In this document: piece after piece, positions 1 through 8,981 of the stretch
How the letters are laid out: each line of letters opens with the position of its first letter
Position numbering within the stretch: position 1 is the first letter of the stretch
From: Auanema rhodensis
Lineage: Eukaryota > Animalia > Nematoda
Length of the DNA: 64,000 nucleotides
Direction of reading: 5' to 3'
Assembly: GCA_964057225.1 (NCBI GenBank)
Contig: OZ059894.1
Span: 15,128,001-15,192,000 of the forward strand
The notes under the pieces: model-generated
The model's input: the letters and a program-made list of their open reading frames with translations, nothing else
Told to the model about the DNA's origin: nothing
Databases searched by the model: none
Made by a program: the position numbers and the translations under genes

Positions 1-804
1 ATCTTGTTTTTTTATTTAAAAAGTCGATTTGGATGGGATGCAGAGCAATATAGCTATTTAAGAGTTGGAATTCAAGCCAGTTCTACGTTGATGGTAAGAA
101 TATGGACTGCAGATTAACAATTACAAAGTACAAAGGCAGTAGAAAACCTTTTTGTTAACTTTGAAGCTCTTGTTTTTGTATATATTTGTCTGGAAAATAC
201 GTGAGATGAAATTCTAAACAACATGCTTATTTAGGCTTTGTTGGCGTATCCCTGGCTTAAAGGAAAAGGGGTCCGTGATACAACACTGTCAATCGTTGGA
301 CTGCTTGCAAGAGCTCTCAGTAAACTTTGGATAGCTTTAGTGCCATCAGCATCATTTATGATCACATGTAACATTGAAACTTTGATTTTCTTAACAATGC
401 ATAGGTGTTTAGGCATATTTCTTGAAATGCTCTCGCGTTTTCCTGCCACTGCTCTTCGATCTTTAATTGCCTCCAACGTTAAAGCACATGAAAGAGGTTA
501 GCATTTCACTAAGATTCAAATCAAAATAGTAGAGAACTTGATGTCTAGGTAGCGCTTTTGCTACCGTTGGAAGCATTGAAGCATTCTGCAATCTTTTGGC
601 TGCCTTTGTATTTCACACATTATTTCCTTGGTCACTTTCATTCCTGCCACAGTTATCATTTATAGTTATGTCAGCACTAATCATACCACCTACTTTCTTA
701 TTGATGTGAGTTTCTAAATATTTTTGTTAATTATCTAATAATATACAGTAGATTATTATGCTTTCTTTTTCAGAATTTTCAAGAAGAAGTTTAAAGAAAA
801 TTGA
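1..804 (+). CDS. SLC46/PCFT-like MFS transporter, 3' portion (5' end outside window)
   Basis: GT-AG exons splice to ILFFYLKSRFGWDAEQYSYLRVGIQASSTLM/ALLAYPWLKGKGVRDTTLSIVGLLARALSKLW.../LEMLSRFPATALRSLIASNVKAHERG/SAFATVGSIEAFCNLLAAFVFHTLFPWSLSFLPQLSFIVMSALII, typical of the SLC46 C-terminal half. Last exon (774-804) is less certain. Confidence 0.8.
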
Positions 805-1214
805 GTTTTTATCAACAACTTTATGAGGTTTATAGAGTTTAAAACACATGCATGTATACAATACAGGTTCTGTTCTAAGCATTATGTAATAAATATTCAT
901 ATTTAAAAAGAATTCAAATAAATTATTTATAGTAATTATCAATCCTTTTAAAAAAAAACGAGCTCAGATCATGCAAAATAGCAAAATATATACTTTAGGG
1001 GATTCATGTAACTGCAGAATTTCCGCTATATTTAGATTTCAAAGTTCATTCTAAAATCAAATCCACCACAAGGGTAATTATGTAATATGATTATATTTTC
1101 TTTATTTTTTAATTCGTTGCTAAACATTAAATGAATAATTATGTTTATTACAGAGCGCTGTAAACAATTTGCAGTGTACTGATGTATGAAAATAAATTAC
1201 AATGTTTCAGAAGT

Positions 1215-1483
1215 TTAATCCAAATTTAAATAGGATTTTTTCCAACGGTCATCATTGGCACGATATGGATTCAAGAACATCTTGCGACGGAATGCATAAG
1301 CTTCTCGTGGAACAGGAACGTAACTATTCCTGTAAAAAAGGTTTTAAGAAAATAATTTTAAAGGTCTTCTGTAACTGTCTACTAGAATACTCACCGTCTG
1401 TCATCCATCATATCAAACACACGTTGCGAGTAACCGAACTCGAAAACAATCAGGAGCATCAAAATAATCGCAAAAAACCGCAT
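1215..1483 (-). CDS. Small secreted neuropeptide-like precursor, 67 aa, 2 exons (1483-1395, 1329-1215)
   Basis: TTTAG acceptor 2 nt before ATG; GTGAGT/TTTTACAG intron keeps frame; product MRFFAIILMLLIVFEFGYSQRVFDMMDDRRNSYVPVPREAYAFRRKMFLNPYRANDDRWKKSYLNLD has a signal peptide and RR, RRK, KK basic sites. Confidence 0.7.
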
Positions 1484-2894
1484 TTCTAAAGATCACAATG
1501 TTGATAAAAGTTTTTTTTCGAACAGTGAGAAGATCTAAGAAAAAATGGAAAAGCCTGGTGTGACGGCAAAAATATGTAAGAATAAAATAACCAAAAATTA
1601 TTTCAAACATGTCAATCGTGTTTTTCACAAACCAAGCTTCAAGAGAACTCTTCAGTAACTGAATAACTTTCAACTTCGATGAGTTAAATAGAACAAAAAC
1701 ATAAATAGTTAAGAGGAATAAAAGGGGAGGAGGACGAATGTGAACTGTGTAGTTATATCTCTTCCTATCCCCATCAATGTAAAAGCAAAGCACTTTCTGG
1801 TTTGTATGAAGTAGAATAATATTAAGGAATTTTAGGAAAATTAGTCTGAAGCTGGAATAAGAATGAAAGTCAAGCCAGCTAGGGGTTTGTACTAATCGTA
1901 AACATAATTAAAGCAAAGGAATTTGAAGCTCCACCTACTTCTTGATTTTGGCTCTTTTCGGTCTTTTTCTTTTATAAACGAGAAAGGGAGGAAAAGATGT
2001 TTGAGCTTCATGATAATATGGAGAGGGAGAGGTGAAGAAACAAATATAATTCAAACGTTGTTGAAAAAGAAAAGTTCAAAAACGTCAAAAAGATGAATAC
2101 GTCACGGGGGAGAATTCAAAACTACAACCGCTGAAAAAAAATGGAATTCTGAATTATCTTGGTTCTTCAACCATGGACACGCTTCATTGTTGCTTTGCTT
2201 GTCTACCTCCGGTTCCGTTTATTCTTTAATTTCACCTACTTCTATTGCAACACAAAAAATATAAAAAATCTTTTCAAAAGTATTATTTTTCCTACAAAAA
2301 TAATATCAAATGAAGTGCAATCCGGGATACAGATTGTTTTCGGACAATGGAATGGAATAGAGGGATACTAAAGAACTTCCTTTGCGGCAATATTGAGGAC
2401 AAGTTTAAAAAGCGACAAAGTTTATATTATAACTGAAATTCTACCGGTTCTTTTGATAGAACTCTTTATTGTTTTTTTTTATATCAGCTGCTGCTCTTAT
2501 CTCATGGACACAAACAAATGGAAGTTCTTAGTCGAATTAATCGTAGTTCCAATATCTGGGCGGGTGGTAGAAGAAAAAATAAAGTTTTCAGTTTAAAAAC
2601 ATCCGATCCGAAAGTAATGACCAGCTCTTAGGTATTTGAAGTAATGAAGTTTCTGTTTTGATTTTCTCCCGTAATTCTGGTCTAATTATAGTTTATCGTA
2701 AGATTATATTAATAGTTCCTAGCTTTCGAAATAATTTTAGAAAAATTCACAGCATGAAGCATTCAGAAAAATCAATGTGTTTATTCATCTGTATACTTGC
2801 TGGTGATTTTGGGCTGTTCGAAGAGACATACAATAGCGAAGTCCTGCGAACTGTCTCTTTGGATGCTGCATAGTGTGTTGAGATATTTTCATAC

Positions 2895-3840
2895 ATGATC
2901 ACTACAACATCCAGCAGTCAATCACCATACTTTGAAAATGTTGATATAGAAAGGTTTGTTATTAACGTTGTAAATTGAAAAACACGGAACCCACGTTCGT
3001 ACTATTTTTACGGATGTTTCAGAGGTGCCTCTGAAATAGAAAACTCTAAAAGTTCTCCTAATATGGAAGGCTTGAAAGAAACAGGAACAGCACAAGTTTT
3101 AAGACACCCACAGTGCAGGTGACATTATTTCTGCTATATTCATTCAATATATGCTATAATGAATTCGATCAAATGTTTATTTATTTTTTAATGAGTTAGC
3201 ATATTCTGTTTTGAATTTCTAAACGTTAGATCATCTAGTAATCTGGATGAATATTTGAAATAAATTATAAAAGTATAAAGAAGGTTACTGTAACTAATAT
3301 ACCCAGAGATGTAGCATTTCTCGACAAAACATTTAAAACTTTAAGATTCATATGGTATCTTCGTACAGGGATAGGAATATTCACAGTATTAGCAATAGCC
3401 ATGTCATCGTTCAACTCACTCATTTCCATAACGCATGTTCTTTTTGGAGTATATTTGGTTGCAATCCTTGTTCCATGCTTCCTTCTTGAGTTTGGCTATA
3501 TTCTGCGTTTCATATGCGGGTTTGTTCTACCCGAATGACTAGGTATGCTATTACTGATTCAGAACAAATGGAGCATTCTGTCAAGTATTTGGAGGTATAT
3601 TGCATTTCGACAATTGGAGAAGAGGACTGTTATATATAGCTATGTCTGTAGTTTGTTTTATACCATCGTTTACCAATAACTACGGAGTTGTATGTGGTAA
3701 AATATATAAAACATATATATATATATAATTTTTATTTTCCAGGAATATGCTTAGATCTTACTGGATTACTGTACTGTGTCAAAGACTGGGAATATAAAAC
3801 AGTTCATACATACATAGCTGATGTACAACAACAGCATTGA
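2895..3840 (+). CDS. TMEM72/Flower(CACFD1)-like multi-pass membrane protein, 5 exons
   Basis: Five exons splice in frame: ...FIWYLRTGIGIFTVLAIAMSSFNSLISITHVLFGVYLVAILVPCFLLEFGYILRFICG/TNGAFCQVFGGILHFDNWRRGLLYIAMSVVCFIP...G/ICLDLTGLLYCVK; hydrophobic pattern and RGLLY..S, TGLLY motifs match the family. Confidence 0.7.
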
Positions 3841-4342
3841 ATACAATTTCACAAATTCATGATATTTCAATAGAAAACTAAATAAAGAATTAAGAAAACT
3901 AAAAAGCTTGAAACGGTTTAAAAGTTTCTTAATTAGGGAATAACTATAAGAAATGAATTACAACTTCTTTATTATATTAATGACACCAAGAAGAAATTGT
4001 TTTCTTAAAAATATAAAATAAATATTTTGTATAATCACCGGAATATTTGCAACTTTCTCACACTATTTGAAATTGTCTAAGAAGTATTGCAGTTATTTCT
4101 AAGCAATAGAATAGGTTTTCTGGCAAACCCTAACAAAAAATATAATATTTATTACATAAATGCAAAACAAAACAAATGTAAGGAATGAAAAAAGATATAA
4201 ATATTCTAAAAAACAATAAATTATTATAGCCTACCACCTATAAGGTTTTCAGACCCAGCTTATTTTAAGGCACATGTTTTCCCAAATCATTTATCACAAT
4301 AGTGTAATTATGAAGTAACCTACTTTGTACATTAAATATATA

Positions 4343-5007
4343 TTATACAACTTTTACTATACACTCCTTCGTCCACCTAAAACCATATATAAACCCCTCT
4401 TCTAACGATAAAATTGGAATGTGACGATATCCTGGTAGATCAGTTGATGATTCACCTTTCAGCTTAATGGGAGCGAATATTTTGTTTTTCTTAAATTTAT
4501 ATATCTTTATATCATAAAAACTGGGCACTTACAACAATAACAGGATCATCAGGAGTTTCACTTACTAAGCTTTCTAAAATAGAATTCATTTCTGATTCAT
4601 TGATATCCTTTTCTTCGGGTATTTTATATCCATAATTAAGCTTAAAAATTTAATTAAAAATATAACTTTCTAAAACCTTCCTACCGCTAATGCTTCATAT
4701 TTCTTAAGCTTATCTTCAGTTCTTTCTAATTTACTGAAAAAGATAGTGATTATTGCCAAGAACAGACAAAAAAAAACGATACGTTGTCAGTTGATCTATT
4801 TCCGTAGAAAGGGTAATCTTATCACCTTCAATCTAGAAACATGATAATGAACAAAAATGTAAATATTATTATAATACATACTTTTTCTACCATATCTAAA
4901 ATTCTATCTTCTAAATCTTCATTTCGCTGCTTTACTTGAGAATATTGTTCTTCTAACAATGAATATTTAGTTTTCCAAAACGATAAATCATCGTTTTGAT
5001 CATCCAT
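4343..5007 (-). CDS. Coiled-coil protein, TJAP1(Pilt)/BEGAIN-like, ~160 aa, 5 exons
   Basis: TTTGTAG acceptor 6 nt before ATG; spliced product MDDQNDDLSFWKTKYSLLEEQYSQVKQRNEDLEDRILDMVEK/IEGDKITLSTEIDQLT/TKLERTEDKLKKYEALA aligns by eye with the TJAP1/BEGAIN coiled coil. Confidence 0.65.
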
Positions 5008-5829
5008 ATATCTCTACAAAATAATTCTTTTTTATAAAGAATAAAACAAGTGGCAAAACATGAAATTGCGCAGAAAAAAATTCATAAAAAATATTACTAA
5101 TATACAAATATTATTTAAATTCCAAAATTATTAATAATATCTAAATTAATTATATAACAGCATGAAGCTCGTAAACACAAAAAAATCTTGAATGAAATGA
5201 AATTTATGAAAAAAGAAACATGTTGGAATACCCAGATTTCTAATCAAAATGAATATCAATAAACGAAGAATAAAATTATTACGTATATTGCGTAATTAAC
5301 CATACAGTATATTTCACCAGGTGTCATTTCTTATATGATATAAGTTTTGAAACTTCAAACTCTCCCCTTTGAAAACTAGAAATGTGGGTTAGCAATAAAC
5401 CAGTACGATAGAAAGGACATTCAGAAACATTACATTTCATTTTGATTTCAGCGACAACAAGCAACAATATCACAGTTGATAAATTTCGGAAGTGTATCTA
5501 CTAGTGATTGATGGTTATGAAATTGGGGGAATCCATTTATTTTTACAAACGATAAAAAGCATCTCCGAAAGCGAGAGTACCCTATTGATTTCGATGATTC
5601 AAATCTGTTCCAAAAAGAACGATTCCGTTTTTGAATCATGTCATTTCATTTCTGATCGGTTCTGTTCAGACCTTGTACACAATTTTTGATATTTTCAATA
5701 TAACCAACATGTTACACATTTATCCTGAATGAAAACTATATTAAACCTCTAAAACTTTATTTATATAAATAAAAGCCAGCCGGAATAAATAGAAGTAGAA
5801 GTGATATTGACATCTGTACAAAAGTGAAG

Positions 5830-7668
5830 TTACTTCAAGTCATCATCGTCGTCCTTATTAATGGCCTTCTTGACTTTAACAAGAAGTGAAGTATGCCATG
5901 AGTCAAGACGGCTAATCTTATCATAATTCTTTACAGCTTCGGTGAACTTCTCTTCATCTTCTTCACCGAGTGCACTAATGAGTTCCTGAAGAAAACCATA
6001 ATATATATCATATTAGTTATTTCATTTACCGCTATGAATTTTGATTCACGTGATTGTGCGAAAGAAGGGGCAGCGTCTTCATAACGTTTTAAGGCATTTT
6101 GAGTATCCAGCTATAAAGAGAAAACTATTACACTTAACTTGGGCAAAAAAATCTTACGGTATCAAGGCACAGGTAGCAAATAAGAGCTTGGAAGAAATGA
6201 TTTTTAGCAGCGTACTTCAACGTTGGATGATCGGCTTCCCAGAAAGCAATTTCTTCAAATACAGTGATAGCTTTTTGGTACTGTTCCAATTGGGCATGAT
6301 ACTAAAGCAAGAAAAAATATTGTTTTCCAATAAAACTGCAATGTTTACCTGAGCAACCTTGATCAAACATTTAGTTGCGCTACTCTTCGATTCTTCTCCC
6401 TTATAGTAGTCGGCTGCTTTTTGGTAATGGAAAATAGATTGTTCGGTATCTGGGCATTCAGTTTCAAAACTGCAACATAATATTAAATTTTGGTTAAAAG
6501 AAATGAAACATACAGCTCAGCAATCGTCACATGGATTTTGGCAGCCATGGTGAAACGGCCCATATCAGTATAAATCTCTGCGGTCTTTAGCAAGCAATCA
6601 ACAGCTAACTAAAACTTATAAATGATTTTCGATAATTAAATATTCGGCAACTACCTGAGGATTGACTTTTCTGTGACAGTTAGCGGCTTCTGCGTACTGG
6701 CTAGCACAATCATGCTTGGAATCACCCTAACGGAAAAATTATATAAAACTTGTTTTTCAAGCTTTTCAAAATCTTACCTGAGGTCCATGAATCTCAGCTG
6801 CACGAACAAAAGCATCTCCAGCTTCCTTCCATAGCTTAGACATTTTAAACAAGTTTCCAGCCTGAATATAAAGTACTTAACGGATAACACCTTTGATATC
6901 TAAACACCACTACAAAATATTTTATTGCATTCACGTTAGGCATGTTATTGGGGTTTTCGTTTATTCCAAGGCCTAGCATATGCACGCACTCCTTCAAAAG
7001 TTTGCTCTTGTTCGTTTCCAAAACGAATTTTCCTAGGAGCTTTGGACTTTGACGAGCTGACCGATACTGTGGTTAAATCCTTTTCTATTTTTTCTAGTCT
7101 TCGATTCATTTTTCTTTTTTCTAATTCAACTTCCATATGTTTAATTTTATGTACAGATGATGAATGTGCATCTCTTTCTGAAGAAGTGAGAAATTTTAAA
7201 CCACATTCTTGTTCAAGACATCGATATTGGGGATCAGCTGAGTCACGAGTTAAGCGAACATTGAAAAAAGGGCAATGGGTTTCATCGGAATGTAACTCCA
7301 AAACGAAGTTCGAAGGAAATGTTTTAGAGCACACAATACATTGATGAGAATGCACAAGCTGATAATGTTCTTCGAAGGATAAGTGATCTTCAAAGGCTTT
7401 GCCGCATCCCATTTCCATACAGGTCATGAAATCAATATCTTCATCTTGGGACTCAACAAGAGAAGAGGACGTGGGTGCTTCCTGGGGAAGGTTAAGGGTG
7501 AAAAAGCCCAAAAAATAAGTATGAAATTTTAATTACTTGAATGAAAAGATCAGCTGCTTCATCAGAACCACCGCCGCCGAAAAATTTACCAAGGAAGCCT
7601 CCACCACCTTTCATTTTTTTCTCAGCCTCTTCGAGCTTCTTTCTAGCTTTAACTTCGCTATCTGCCAT
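5830..7668 (-). CDS. snap-1: alpha-soluble NSF attachment protein (alpha-SNAP)
   Basis: Exon 1 7668-7537 ([44 protein letters not shown]), exon 2 6861-6778 ([18 protein letters not shown]), later exons [14 protein letters not shown] and [14 protein letters not shown], acidic end DDDDDLK*. TTTTAG acceptor 1 nt before ATG. Confidence 0.96.
6921..6926 (-). terminator. AATAAA polyadenylation signal of the nested ZNF511-like exon
   Basis: Canonical hexamer ~19 nt after the stop at 6945 and ~60 nt before the snap-1 exon 2 acceptor. Confidence 0.6.
6945..7481 (-). CDS. ZNF511: ZNF511-like triple C2H2 zinc-finger coding exon nested in snap-1 intron 1 (same strand)
   Basis: [75 protein letters not shown] plus C-terminal PRKIRFG matches the ZNF511 architecture. 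Acceptor TTCCCCAG ends at 7482; AATAAA at 6926-6921. Confidence 0.85.
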   Translation of the reverse strand, partial: EAPTSSSLVESQDEDIDFMTCMEMGCGKAFEDHLSFEEHYQLVHSHQCIVCSKTFPSNFVLELHSDETHCPFFNVRLTRDSADPQYRCLEQECGLKFLTSSERDAHSSSVHKIKHMEVELEKRKMNRRLEKIEKDLTTVSVSSSKSKAPRKIRFGNEQEQTFEGVRAYARPWNKRKPQ

Positions 7669-8030
7669 CCTAAAACAATAATAATAATAAAAAGAAATTC
7701 TTAATAAATAAGAAAAATAAGTAAAGAAAATATAAAAGAATTATGGAGAAGCGCGCTAAAAAAAGACCAATAGCGAAATCAATAAGTTGCTTGCGCGCTC
7801 CAACATCATTGTTGGTTGCTCTAGTATCGATTCCTTCCATGAAAAAGTCTCACCCCAAGAAAATGTTCTTTTTTTTAATATTAATATTAGTGATATTGAA
7901 GTTTATTAAGAATAATGGATGAAATACACAAAGATAATGAGTTGGCTTTATCCAATAAGTAGTTTGGCAATTAATAACTGCGTACATTTTTATAGTTGTA
8001 AATACAAAGTGTTGAAGAACGAGATCAGTT

Positions 8031-8981
8031 TTAATGCTCACGCAGGTTTTCCTCTGGGATAATTCCTTTGCGAGCAAGCAACTCCTTTATATTATTAGTA
8101 AGTTGTTGTGATACAGGAGATAACTGATTGACGTCTGTTACCAACATCTAAATTAAGTATATTAATTTTTACAAGTCTTTAAAAATGCAATTTACTTGAT
8201 GTAGAGTTGGCGGACCATCCATTGCTGCTGTAACTGGCGATCCATTTATAGAAAATAAGACTTCATCATTTCTTGATGGACGATAAGCAGTTGCTCTGAA
8301 ATTTACATTAACCTCACCATATCATGATAAAACACTTACGGAACATTTTCAATTCCAGACTTTACATGTAAAATAGCAGGAACGCGAACAGCACGTCCTG
8401 CTGGTGTGAATAAATTAAGTTGTCTACCACGTGGTCTGAATAAAATGTTATTAATTAAGGTTATGTTAAATTTGATGATTGAAATACTGATACATATAAG
8501 CAAATAACATACTGTGCACTAGGTCTTACAACTGTTTCTGGTAATACAACATTGGTCGTATTCTCCTTATTATCTATAGTATTTCTTTCTGCTTTGACCT
8601 GTTACAACATTATAATAAATGAAATTCATTCGGACCCTTACGTTATTTGTCTTGGTACCACCTAAGATGTTCTCTTCGAAAAATTGTAGAAAATTCATTT
8701 TGCGGCATTCCTTAATTACTATTTTATATTTATCGATATTATTAATACCACCAACCTCTGGAACAAGCGTTACATAATATTCATCTATTTGTTCATCGAT
8801 ATATTGAAGATAACGCTCTCTAATCTTGTCAAATCGTTCTTTAGCTTCTTGTTCTTAAAAAATTAAAAATATAAATTTGAAAAATATGTACAATACTTTC
8901 TCTTTCCGTTTCGGAATGGAACTGTTGTTTCAATTCACTATTTTTAGGTTTGCTTTTTGTTCTAGTGGATCTCTTCGACAT
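8031..8981 (-). CDS. csc-1: Borealin-related chromosomal passenger subunit CSC-1, 6 exons
   Basis: In-frame splice model MSKRSTRTKSKPK...EAKERFDKIRERYL...FTPAGRAVRVPAIL...AYRPSRNDEVLFSINGSPV...; the TPAGR and FSxNGSP motifs are characteristic of CSC-1/Borealin. Confidence 0.75.

Follow-up and report, generated by a model that had tools for sequence, protein, structure and literature searches.

Auanema rhodensis snap-1 probably yields alpha-SNAP and a ZNF511-like zinc-finger protein from one shared coding first exon

The snap-1 gene, which encodes the membrane-fusion factor alpha-SNAP, lies in a 64,000-nucleotide (nt) stretch of the genome of the nematode Auanema rhodensis (contig OZ059894.1 of assembly GCA_964057225.1, positions 15,128,001 to 15,192,000), hereafter the window, and its first intron encloses an exon coding for three C2H2 zinc fingers of the ZNF511 family. 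We consider it probable, at about 0.8, that this is the orthologue of a nematode snap-1 locus in which one promoter, one start codon, and alternative terminal exons give rise to two proteins. The evidence consists of two RNA splice joints leaving the same exon-1 donor, the homology of both protein parts, and a nesting and reading frame that are conserved across Rhabditida. All coordinates are positions in the window (Table 1), and the alpha-SNAP / ZNF511-like locus is on the minus strand throughout.

In the proposed arrangement, transcription would begin upstream of exon 1, and a single promoter, ATG, and splice donor would serve both products. Joining the donor to the distal acceptor at 6862 would produce an alpha-SNAP of 294 amino acids (aa) from exons 1-8, and joining it to the proximal acceptor at 7482 would produce a 222-aa chimera (44 + 178) composed of SNAP residues 1-44, an acidic and serine-rich linker, three ZNF511-family C2H2 fingers, and a basic tail. 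The open reading frame of this predicted chimera would end at 6945 whether the RNA is cleaved past the AATAAA at 6926-6921 or continues into the SNAP exons. As read from the sequence, the exon-1 donor is GTAATT, at 7536, and read-through of it in the window leads to a stop after 14 codons. The proximal acceptor is CCCCAG (last base 7482) and the distal acceptor TATTCAG (last base 6862, with SNAP exon 2 beginning at 6861); the distal acceptor is the closer of the two to the nematode UUUUCAG consensus, and the proximal one is weaker-looking. The chimera is presumably translated from the SNAP ATG in A. rhodensis, the zinc-finger mRNA may be polyadenylated mostly near 6900, and the choice between proximal splicing with cleavage and distal splicing would then set the ratio of the two products.

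RNA evidence was taken from Logan contigs of four public runs of one study (X1-X4), which were mapped to positions 5500-8600; such contigs give presence only, and carry no information on abundance, strand, individual RNA molecules, 5′ termini, or polyadenylation sites. The contigs represent RNA because they are spliced: each of the four runs has the six SNAP introns further downstream (44-51 nt) spliced out, and the alpha-SNAP exon borders were taken from these joints. Both joints from the exon-1 donor are present, 7537>7481 with 55 nt skipped in X2, X3, and X4, and 7537>6861 with 675 nt skipped in X2 alone among the four runs. The zinc-finger path in X2 is a separate 679-nt contig reaching from 30 nt inside exon 1 to 30 nt inside exon 2, as is typical where an alternative path connects the two SNAP exons. 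The zinc-finger exon is in frame with exon 1 and has RNA contig coverage in four of four runs. Contig depth in X2 was 12.4 for the zinc-finger path versus 308 for the exon 1-exon 2 joint, which would point to a minor isoform, but contig depth cannot rank the parts of a gene and these figures were not relied on. A first-pass annotation of the window had claimed that two unrelated proteins have one coding first exon in common, and this claim is borne out by the two RNA joints together with the continuity of the frame at seven of seven nematode loci (below). The exon, intron, stop, AATAAA, and acceptor positions that it had given all match when re-read from the sequence, the contrast it drew between a 675-nt intron 1 and other introns of ~50 nt agrees with the RNA joints (675 nt versus 44-51 nt in the six others), and the two junctions it had singled out for checking, from the exon-1 donor to either acceptor, are those recovered here, in three runs and one run, respectively.

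Judged from its sequence relatives, the zinc-finger exon constitutes a genuine, conserved gene of the ZNF511 / lethal(2)k10201 family and not a chance open reading frame, because an exhaustive HMMER search with it retrieved 737 relatives at E<=0.001 and because both histidines of finger 1 and every zinc ligand of the other two fingers are invariant. The closest non-nematode relatives, with E values of 1e-13 to 1e-15, are ZNF511-like proteins of a scallop, a sponge, and a bryozoan and the lethal(2)k10201 protein of a sand fly, and the Atlas feature score to the ZNF511 / lethal(2)k10201 clusters is 0.95. In an alignment of 13 sequences the invariant positions are H39 and H44 (finger 1), C48, C51, H64, and H69 (finger 2), and C88, C93, H106, and H111 (finger 3), and the finger-1 cysteines occur in every complete sequence. 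Identity of the zinc-finger part is about 27-45% to the C. elegans and B. malayi proteins, whose linkers are unalignable with that of the window, and about 35-45% to orthologues across Rhabditida. The exon is single-copy in the 181-Mb genome, and ZNF511 is a widespread eukaryotic gene outside nematodes. Against the Pfam family DUF7565 (PF24446) the exon scored 16.4 bits, under the gathering cut-off of 27.1; since named ZNF511-like relatives also fall under this cut-off (21-24.5 bits or no match), we take the model to be insensitive rather than the protein foreign, and DUF7565 was dropped as a criterion. A PDB profile search and a fold search with the zinc-finger core returned generic C2H2 arrays only (WT1, CTCF, TFIIIA) and no functional lead. 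A word-indexed single-sequence search with the 178-aa exon gave no match, but HMMER and an alignment query did find relatives; an exact look-up in protein records of the 178-aa product and of the 160-aa product starting at the internal methionine at 7427 also gave no match and is uninformative.

The nesting is conserved well beyond A. rhodensis. Annotated proteins in which a SNAP N-terminus runs into the zinc finger occur in at least 12 other nematode species, namely Caenorhabditis elegans, C. nigoni, C. brenneri, Brugia malayi, B. pahangi, B. timori, Gongylonema pulchrum, Ancylostoma duodenale, A. ceylanicum, Strongylus vulgaris, Nippostrongylus brasiliensis, and Diploscapter pachys. The protein recorded for Plectus sambesii begins without a SNAP part. 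The first-pass annotation had suggested looking for the same nesting at other nematode snap-1 loci, and it is indeed found there, in the same host intron and with the frame and start codon of SNAP. On C. elegans chromosome V, a 256-aa protein (NP_001380251.1; VGM69557.1, A0A486WXT8) and a 295-aa SNAP are called from one start coordinate, and in B. malayi a 205-aa protein (XP_001902018.2), named "BMA-SNAP-1, isoform c" in UniProt, has a start coordinate common to the SNAP product. Seven genomic loci were read, the window included, six of which reach SNAP exon 2, and two architectures were encountered. In the first, a proximal intron separates the SNAP part from the finger exon; its length is 55 nt for the window and 75 nt for another nematode (L001), and rises to 265 nt in B. 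malayi and to 1,401 nt in A. ceylanicum. In the second, found in Caenorhabditis and in a GC-rich metagenomic nematode, there is no intron, and the donor CAG|GTG is read through, the GTG supplying a valine, which in Caenorhabditis follows DLFIQ.

At none of the seven loci does a stop in the SNAP frame interrupt the linker that leads from the SNAP part to the first finger, and stops are present in at least one other frame. The linker differs in length from locus to locus (8, 16, 20, 26, 33, 34, and 51 aa), yet the frame stays open, so every insertion or deletion has kept the frame. Three of the seven loci (B. malayi, A. ceylanicum, and the metagenomic nematode) have no methionine in the linker, and by inspection of the protein sequences the same is true of the other strongylids and of Gongylonema; in those orthologues the first finger is therefore translatable only from the SNAP ATG. 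Open in-frame linkers and the missing methionine are together difficult to square with an independent gene whose only tie to snap-1 is its place in an intron. At all six loci that reach SNAP exon 2, an AATAAA is located at or just past the zinc-finger stop, and between this stop and the exon-2 acceptor lie 74-109 nt at five of the six loci and 521 nt at that of B. malayi; even A. ceylanicum, with its proximal intron of 1.4 kb, has a short gap here. Separately, a 212-aa model in C. auriculariae begins with the SNAP N-terminus, continues with a glycine-rich SNAP part in another frame, and then enters the zinc finger, and is probably the result of a mis-chosen acceptor.

The alpha-SNAP half of the locus is conventional. 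An exon-by-exon search matched exons 1-8 to Pfam SNAP (PF14938) at 2-40, 41-65, 69-91, 93-122, 124-163, 165-209, 214-238, and 240-282, and as the matches of exons 1 and 2 are contiguous in the model, splicing to the distal acceptor gives back an alpha-SNAP without interruption. Exon 1 covers helix 1, a Gly/Phe-rich hydrophobic loop (residues 21-34, Gly-flanked, with F25, L26, F29, and F30), and the start of helix 2. The loop was placed by comparison with mammalian alpha-SNAP, in which loop residues 27-32 (F27/F28) insert into membranes and are required for efficient SNARE disassembly (PMC12923601). As modelled by AlphaFold, the chimera that occurs naturally in B. malayi has a confident three-finger core (predicted local distance difference test, pLDDT, ~90 over residues 50-150), an N-terminal helix at 3-20 followed by a flexible unstructured loop that is not packed on the core, and a disordered basic tail; the SNAP piece, being unpacked on the finger core, looks in this model like an independent appendage. 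The 44 shared residues may confer membrane binding or some other SNAP-derived property on the zinc-finger protein. A fuller proposal, that these residues hold a probably nucleic-acid-binding zinc-finger protein at membranes or near SNARE/NSF and that the 74-109-nt spacing is a tuned kinetic switch coupling the two outputs across Rhabditida, is speculative and in our estimate rather unlikely.

Several observations weigh against the shared-exon reading. All of the RNA support in A. rhodensis comes as presence-only assembled contigs of one study, and the contigs of X1, X3, and X4 extend from the zinc-finger exon over the distal acceptor and through every SNAP exon that follows, a pattern that offers no support for cleavage near 6900. 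In B. malayi, contigs from RNA runs hold intron 1 fully unspliced. The X1 contig has 7481 as its very first base, an outcome to be expected from a de Bruijn branch at the acceptor and if two upstream sequences join there, and a second 5′ form, either spliced leader (SL)-spliced or unspliced, may therefore exist. The alternative to which this last point leads is that the zinc finger is a nested independent gene, mainly SL trans-spliced at 7482 and translated from the methionine at 7427 into a 160-aa protein, with the joint from exon 1 to 7481 a minor by-product. Also counting in its favor and against a shared start codon, the methionine at 7427 is placed just before the first finger, two codons ahead of the first cysteine, and the genome has about 3,450 canonical SL1 copies. 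However, the cis joint 7537>7481 was assembled in three of the four runs, no SL-like loose end at 7481 was reported among the RNA contigs of the four runs, and in nematodes an upstream cis donor normally outcompetes trans-splicing. The stretch upstream of the methionine is moreover open and in frame with exon 1 both in the window and at all six other loci, the orthologues named above have no linker methionine from which such a protein could begin, and Caenorhabditis, having no proximal acceptor whatsoever, offers no site for an independent trans-spliced zinc-finger mRNA. We therefore regard an independent nested gene as improbable.

Two further sets of observations touch on these subjects. The SL1 22-mer has 3,451 matches genome-wide and zero for a reversed control, and it occurs in large tandem arrays at C3:6741531-6766485 and C3:14134320-14136387 with periods of ~252 and 341 nt. 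The B. malayi contigs L013:1-1331 and L015:1-1023 (L002:5104-6434) are colinear with the genome, both beginning 29 nt short of the point where snap-1 exon 1 ends and L013 reaching 30 nt into exon 2, so the level of intron-retaining snap-1 RNA in Brugia suffices for assembly.

A second alternative is an operon-like hybrid, in which RNA downstream of the zinc-finger poly(A) site would be SL2 trans-spliced at 6862 and yield a truncated alpha-SNAP from a methionine in exon 2, one that has no membrane loop, beside the chimera and the full SNAP. Nematode operons have an intercistronic spacing of roughly 100 nt, which the 74-109-nt gap between stop and acceptor resembles in five of six loci, A. ceylanicum included, and the C. 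nigoni and A. ceylanicum loci are annotated as two genes with SNAP products of 246 and 244 aa. These two-gene models are probably prediction artefacts, however, and the exon-2 methionine is conserved in alpha-SNAPs generally and hence uninformative; the RNA contigs have no SL loose ends and no sign of SL2, and the gap in B. malayi is far outside the range of the other loci. Taken together, these points make such a hybrid highly improbable. Least credible of all, and to our minds nearly without weight, is the proposal that the zinc-finger RNAs are non-productive snap-1 processing variants (a cryptic acceptor plus a retained intron) around a reading frame that is no longer a functional gene: it draws on the contigs that pass from the zinc-finger exon into the SNAP exons with no second splice and on the fully unspliced intron-1 RNA of B. 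malayi, but the frame is intact, single-copy, and conserved across Rhabditida with the zinc ligands invariant as described, the core of the B. malayi orthologue is modelled confidently by AlphaFold, and A. rhodensis has no second copy with which to replace a gene that is widespread in eukaryotes.

Table 1. Features of the alpha-SNAP / ZNF511-like locus in the window, with the evidence for each
Feature	Position	Strand	Evidence
Shared coding exon 1, 44 codons, ATG 7668, ends DLFIQ, phase 0	7537..7668	-	Pfam SNAP match; both RNA joints use its donor
Proximal intron, 55 nt, GT..AG, spliced out in zinc-finger isoform	7482..7536	-	RNA joint in X2, X3, X4
ZNF511 / l(2)k10201-like exon, 178 codons (7481-6948) + TAA (6947-6945), three C2H2 fingers	6945..7481	-	Homology and RNA
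AATAAA poly(A) signal, 18 nt past zinc-finger stop	6921..6926	-	Sequence reading; contigs do not show use
Spacer, 83 nt, zinc-finger stop to SNAP exon-2 acceptor; presumed cleavage site inside	6862..6944	-	Contigs cross unspliced
alpha-SNAP intron 1, 675 nt, encloses zinc-finger exon	6862..7536	-	675-nt RNA skip in X2
alpha-SNAP exon 2, 28 codons	6778..6861	-	Pfam SNAP 41-65 and RNA joints
alpha-SNAP exons 3-8	6726-6655, 6608-6514, 6469-6349, 6301-6158, 6110-6030, 5985-5830 (stop in last)	-	Six RNA joints and Pfam SNAP 69-282

Around the start of the locus, an ATT/TTA repeat run at 7666-7702 is placed just upstream of the snap-1 ATG; it was skipped as a repeat in the contig mapping, which hides the 5′ end of exon 1 and its SL status. 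An expressed, spliced gene lies upstream of snap-1 on the same strand at 8031-8600 (-), where RNA contigs splice out 8148-8195, 8296-8339, and 8436-8512; the gene has a stop near 8033-8031 and an AATAAA at 7905-7900, and contigs end at 7844-7973. The exon-1 acceptor of snap-1, at 7671/7670, is ~175-210 nt from the end of this gene, and given that gap the two may form an operon.

The annotations of C. elegans and B. malayi already contain the pairing of alpha-SNAP with a ZNF511-like protein, which is therefore not new to the databases; literature searches, which did not cover subscription journals, found no paper describing it, and in the literature searched no function was described for ZNF511, its mentions being incidental. 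What the present analysis adds to those annotations is RNA support in one more species, the breadth of conservation within Rhabditida, the argument from conservation of the frame, the recognition of two architectures, and the short, conserved distance from poly(A) signal to distal acceptor. The locus would be a clean example, stable in evolution, of one start codon and one coding exon giving rise to two unrelated eukaryotic proteins that are each widely conserved, a pairing kept through changes of architecture that range from a proximal intron of 55 nt to one of 1.4 kb or to donor read-through in Caenorhabditis, and the obligatory fusion in nematodes of ZNF511 to the alpha-SNAP membrane loop offers a testable lead to the function of ZNF511. 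There is also a practical point for annotation, as gene predictors handle this locus badly. Some models are SNAP-finger-SNAP fusions of 385-430 aa made through an invented donor in the zinc-finger exon (N. brasiliensis, 412-430 aa; Gongylonema, 385 aa), others split the locus in two and leave a SNAP of 244-246 aa without exon 1 (C. nigoni, A. ceylanicum), and Cylicostephanus is also among the species with proteins whose automatic annotation of the locus is discordant.

Several known systems bear comparison with the window. In C. elegans, the first exon of eat-18 lies within intron 1 of lev-10 and is spliced onto an exon of lev-10 in a different frame (PMC7173930); as in the window, a small gene is nested in a first intron and joined to its host by splicing, but the first exon is not shared (PMC7173930). 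The snap-1 loci of C. elegans and B. malayi resemble the window in host gene, in intron, in the in-frame fusion of the SNAP N-terminus to ZNF511-like fingers, and in the poly(A) hexamer at the stop, which is followed by a gap to the exon-2 acceptor of 100 nt in C. elegans and 521 nt in B. malayi. C. elegans differs from the window in that an extra intron divides the SNAP N-terminus and that donor read-through, with a composite terminal exon, produces the chimera; the 55-nt proximal intron of the window instead has its counterparts in B. malayi and A. ceylanicum. The cholinergic locus unc-17/cha-1 of C. elegans likewise has one promoter and a first exon spliced to two gene bodies, one nested in the first intron of the other, and the distinction made in the first-pass annotation holds: there the shared exon is non-coding and the proteins have no residues in common, whereas the products of the window would share an ATG and 44 codons. 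A common 5′ coding part with alternative 3′ parts, selected by splicing versus cleavage, is also familiar from calcitonin/CGRP, from secreted and membrane IgM (intronic polyadenylation), and from Drosophila lola, with its common N-terminal exons and alternative zinc-finger exons. The products in those systems are variants of one protein family; in the window, by contrast, the common part is a fragment of a tetratricopeptide-repeat-like fusion factor, and the alternative part is a zinc-finger gene that is otherwise free-standing and widely conserved.

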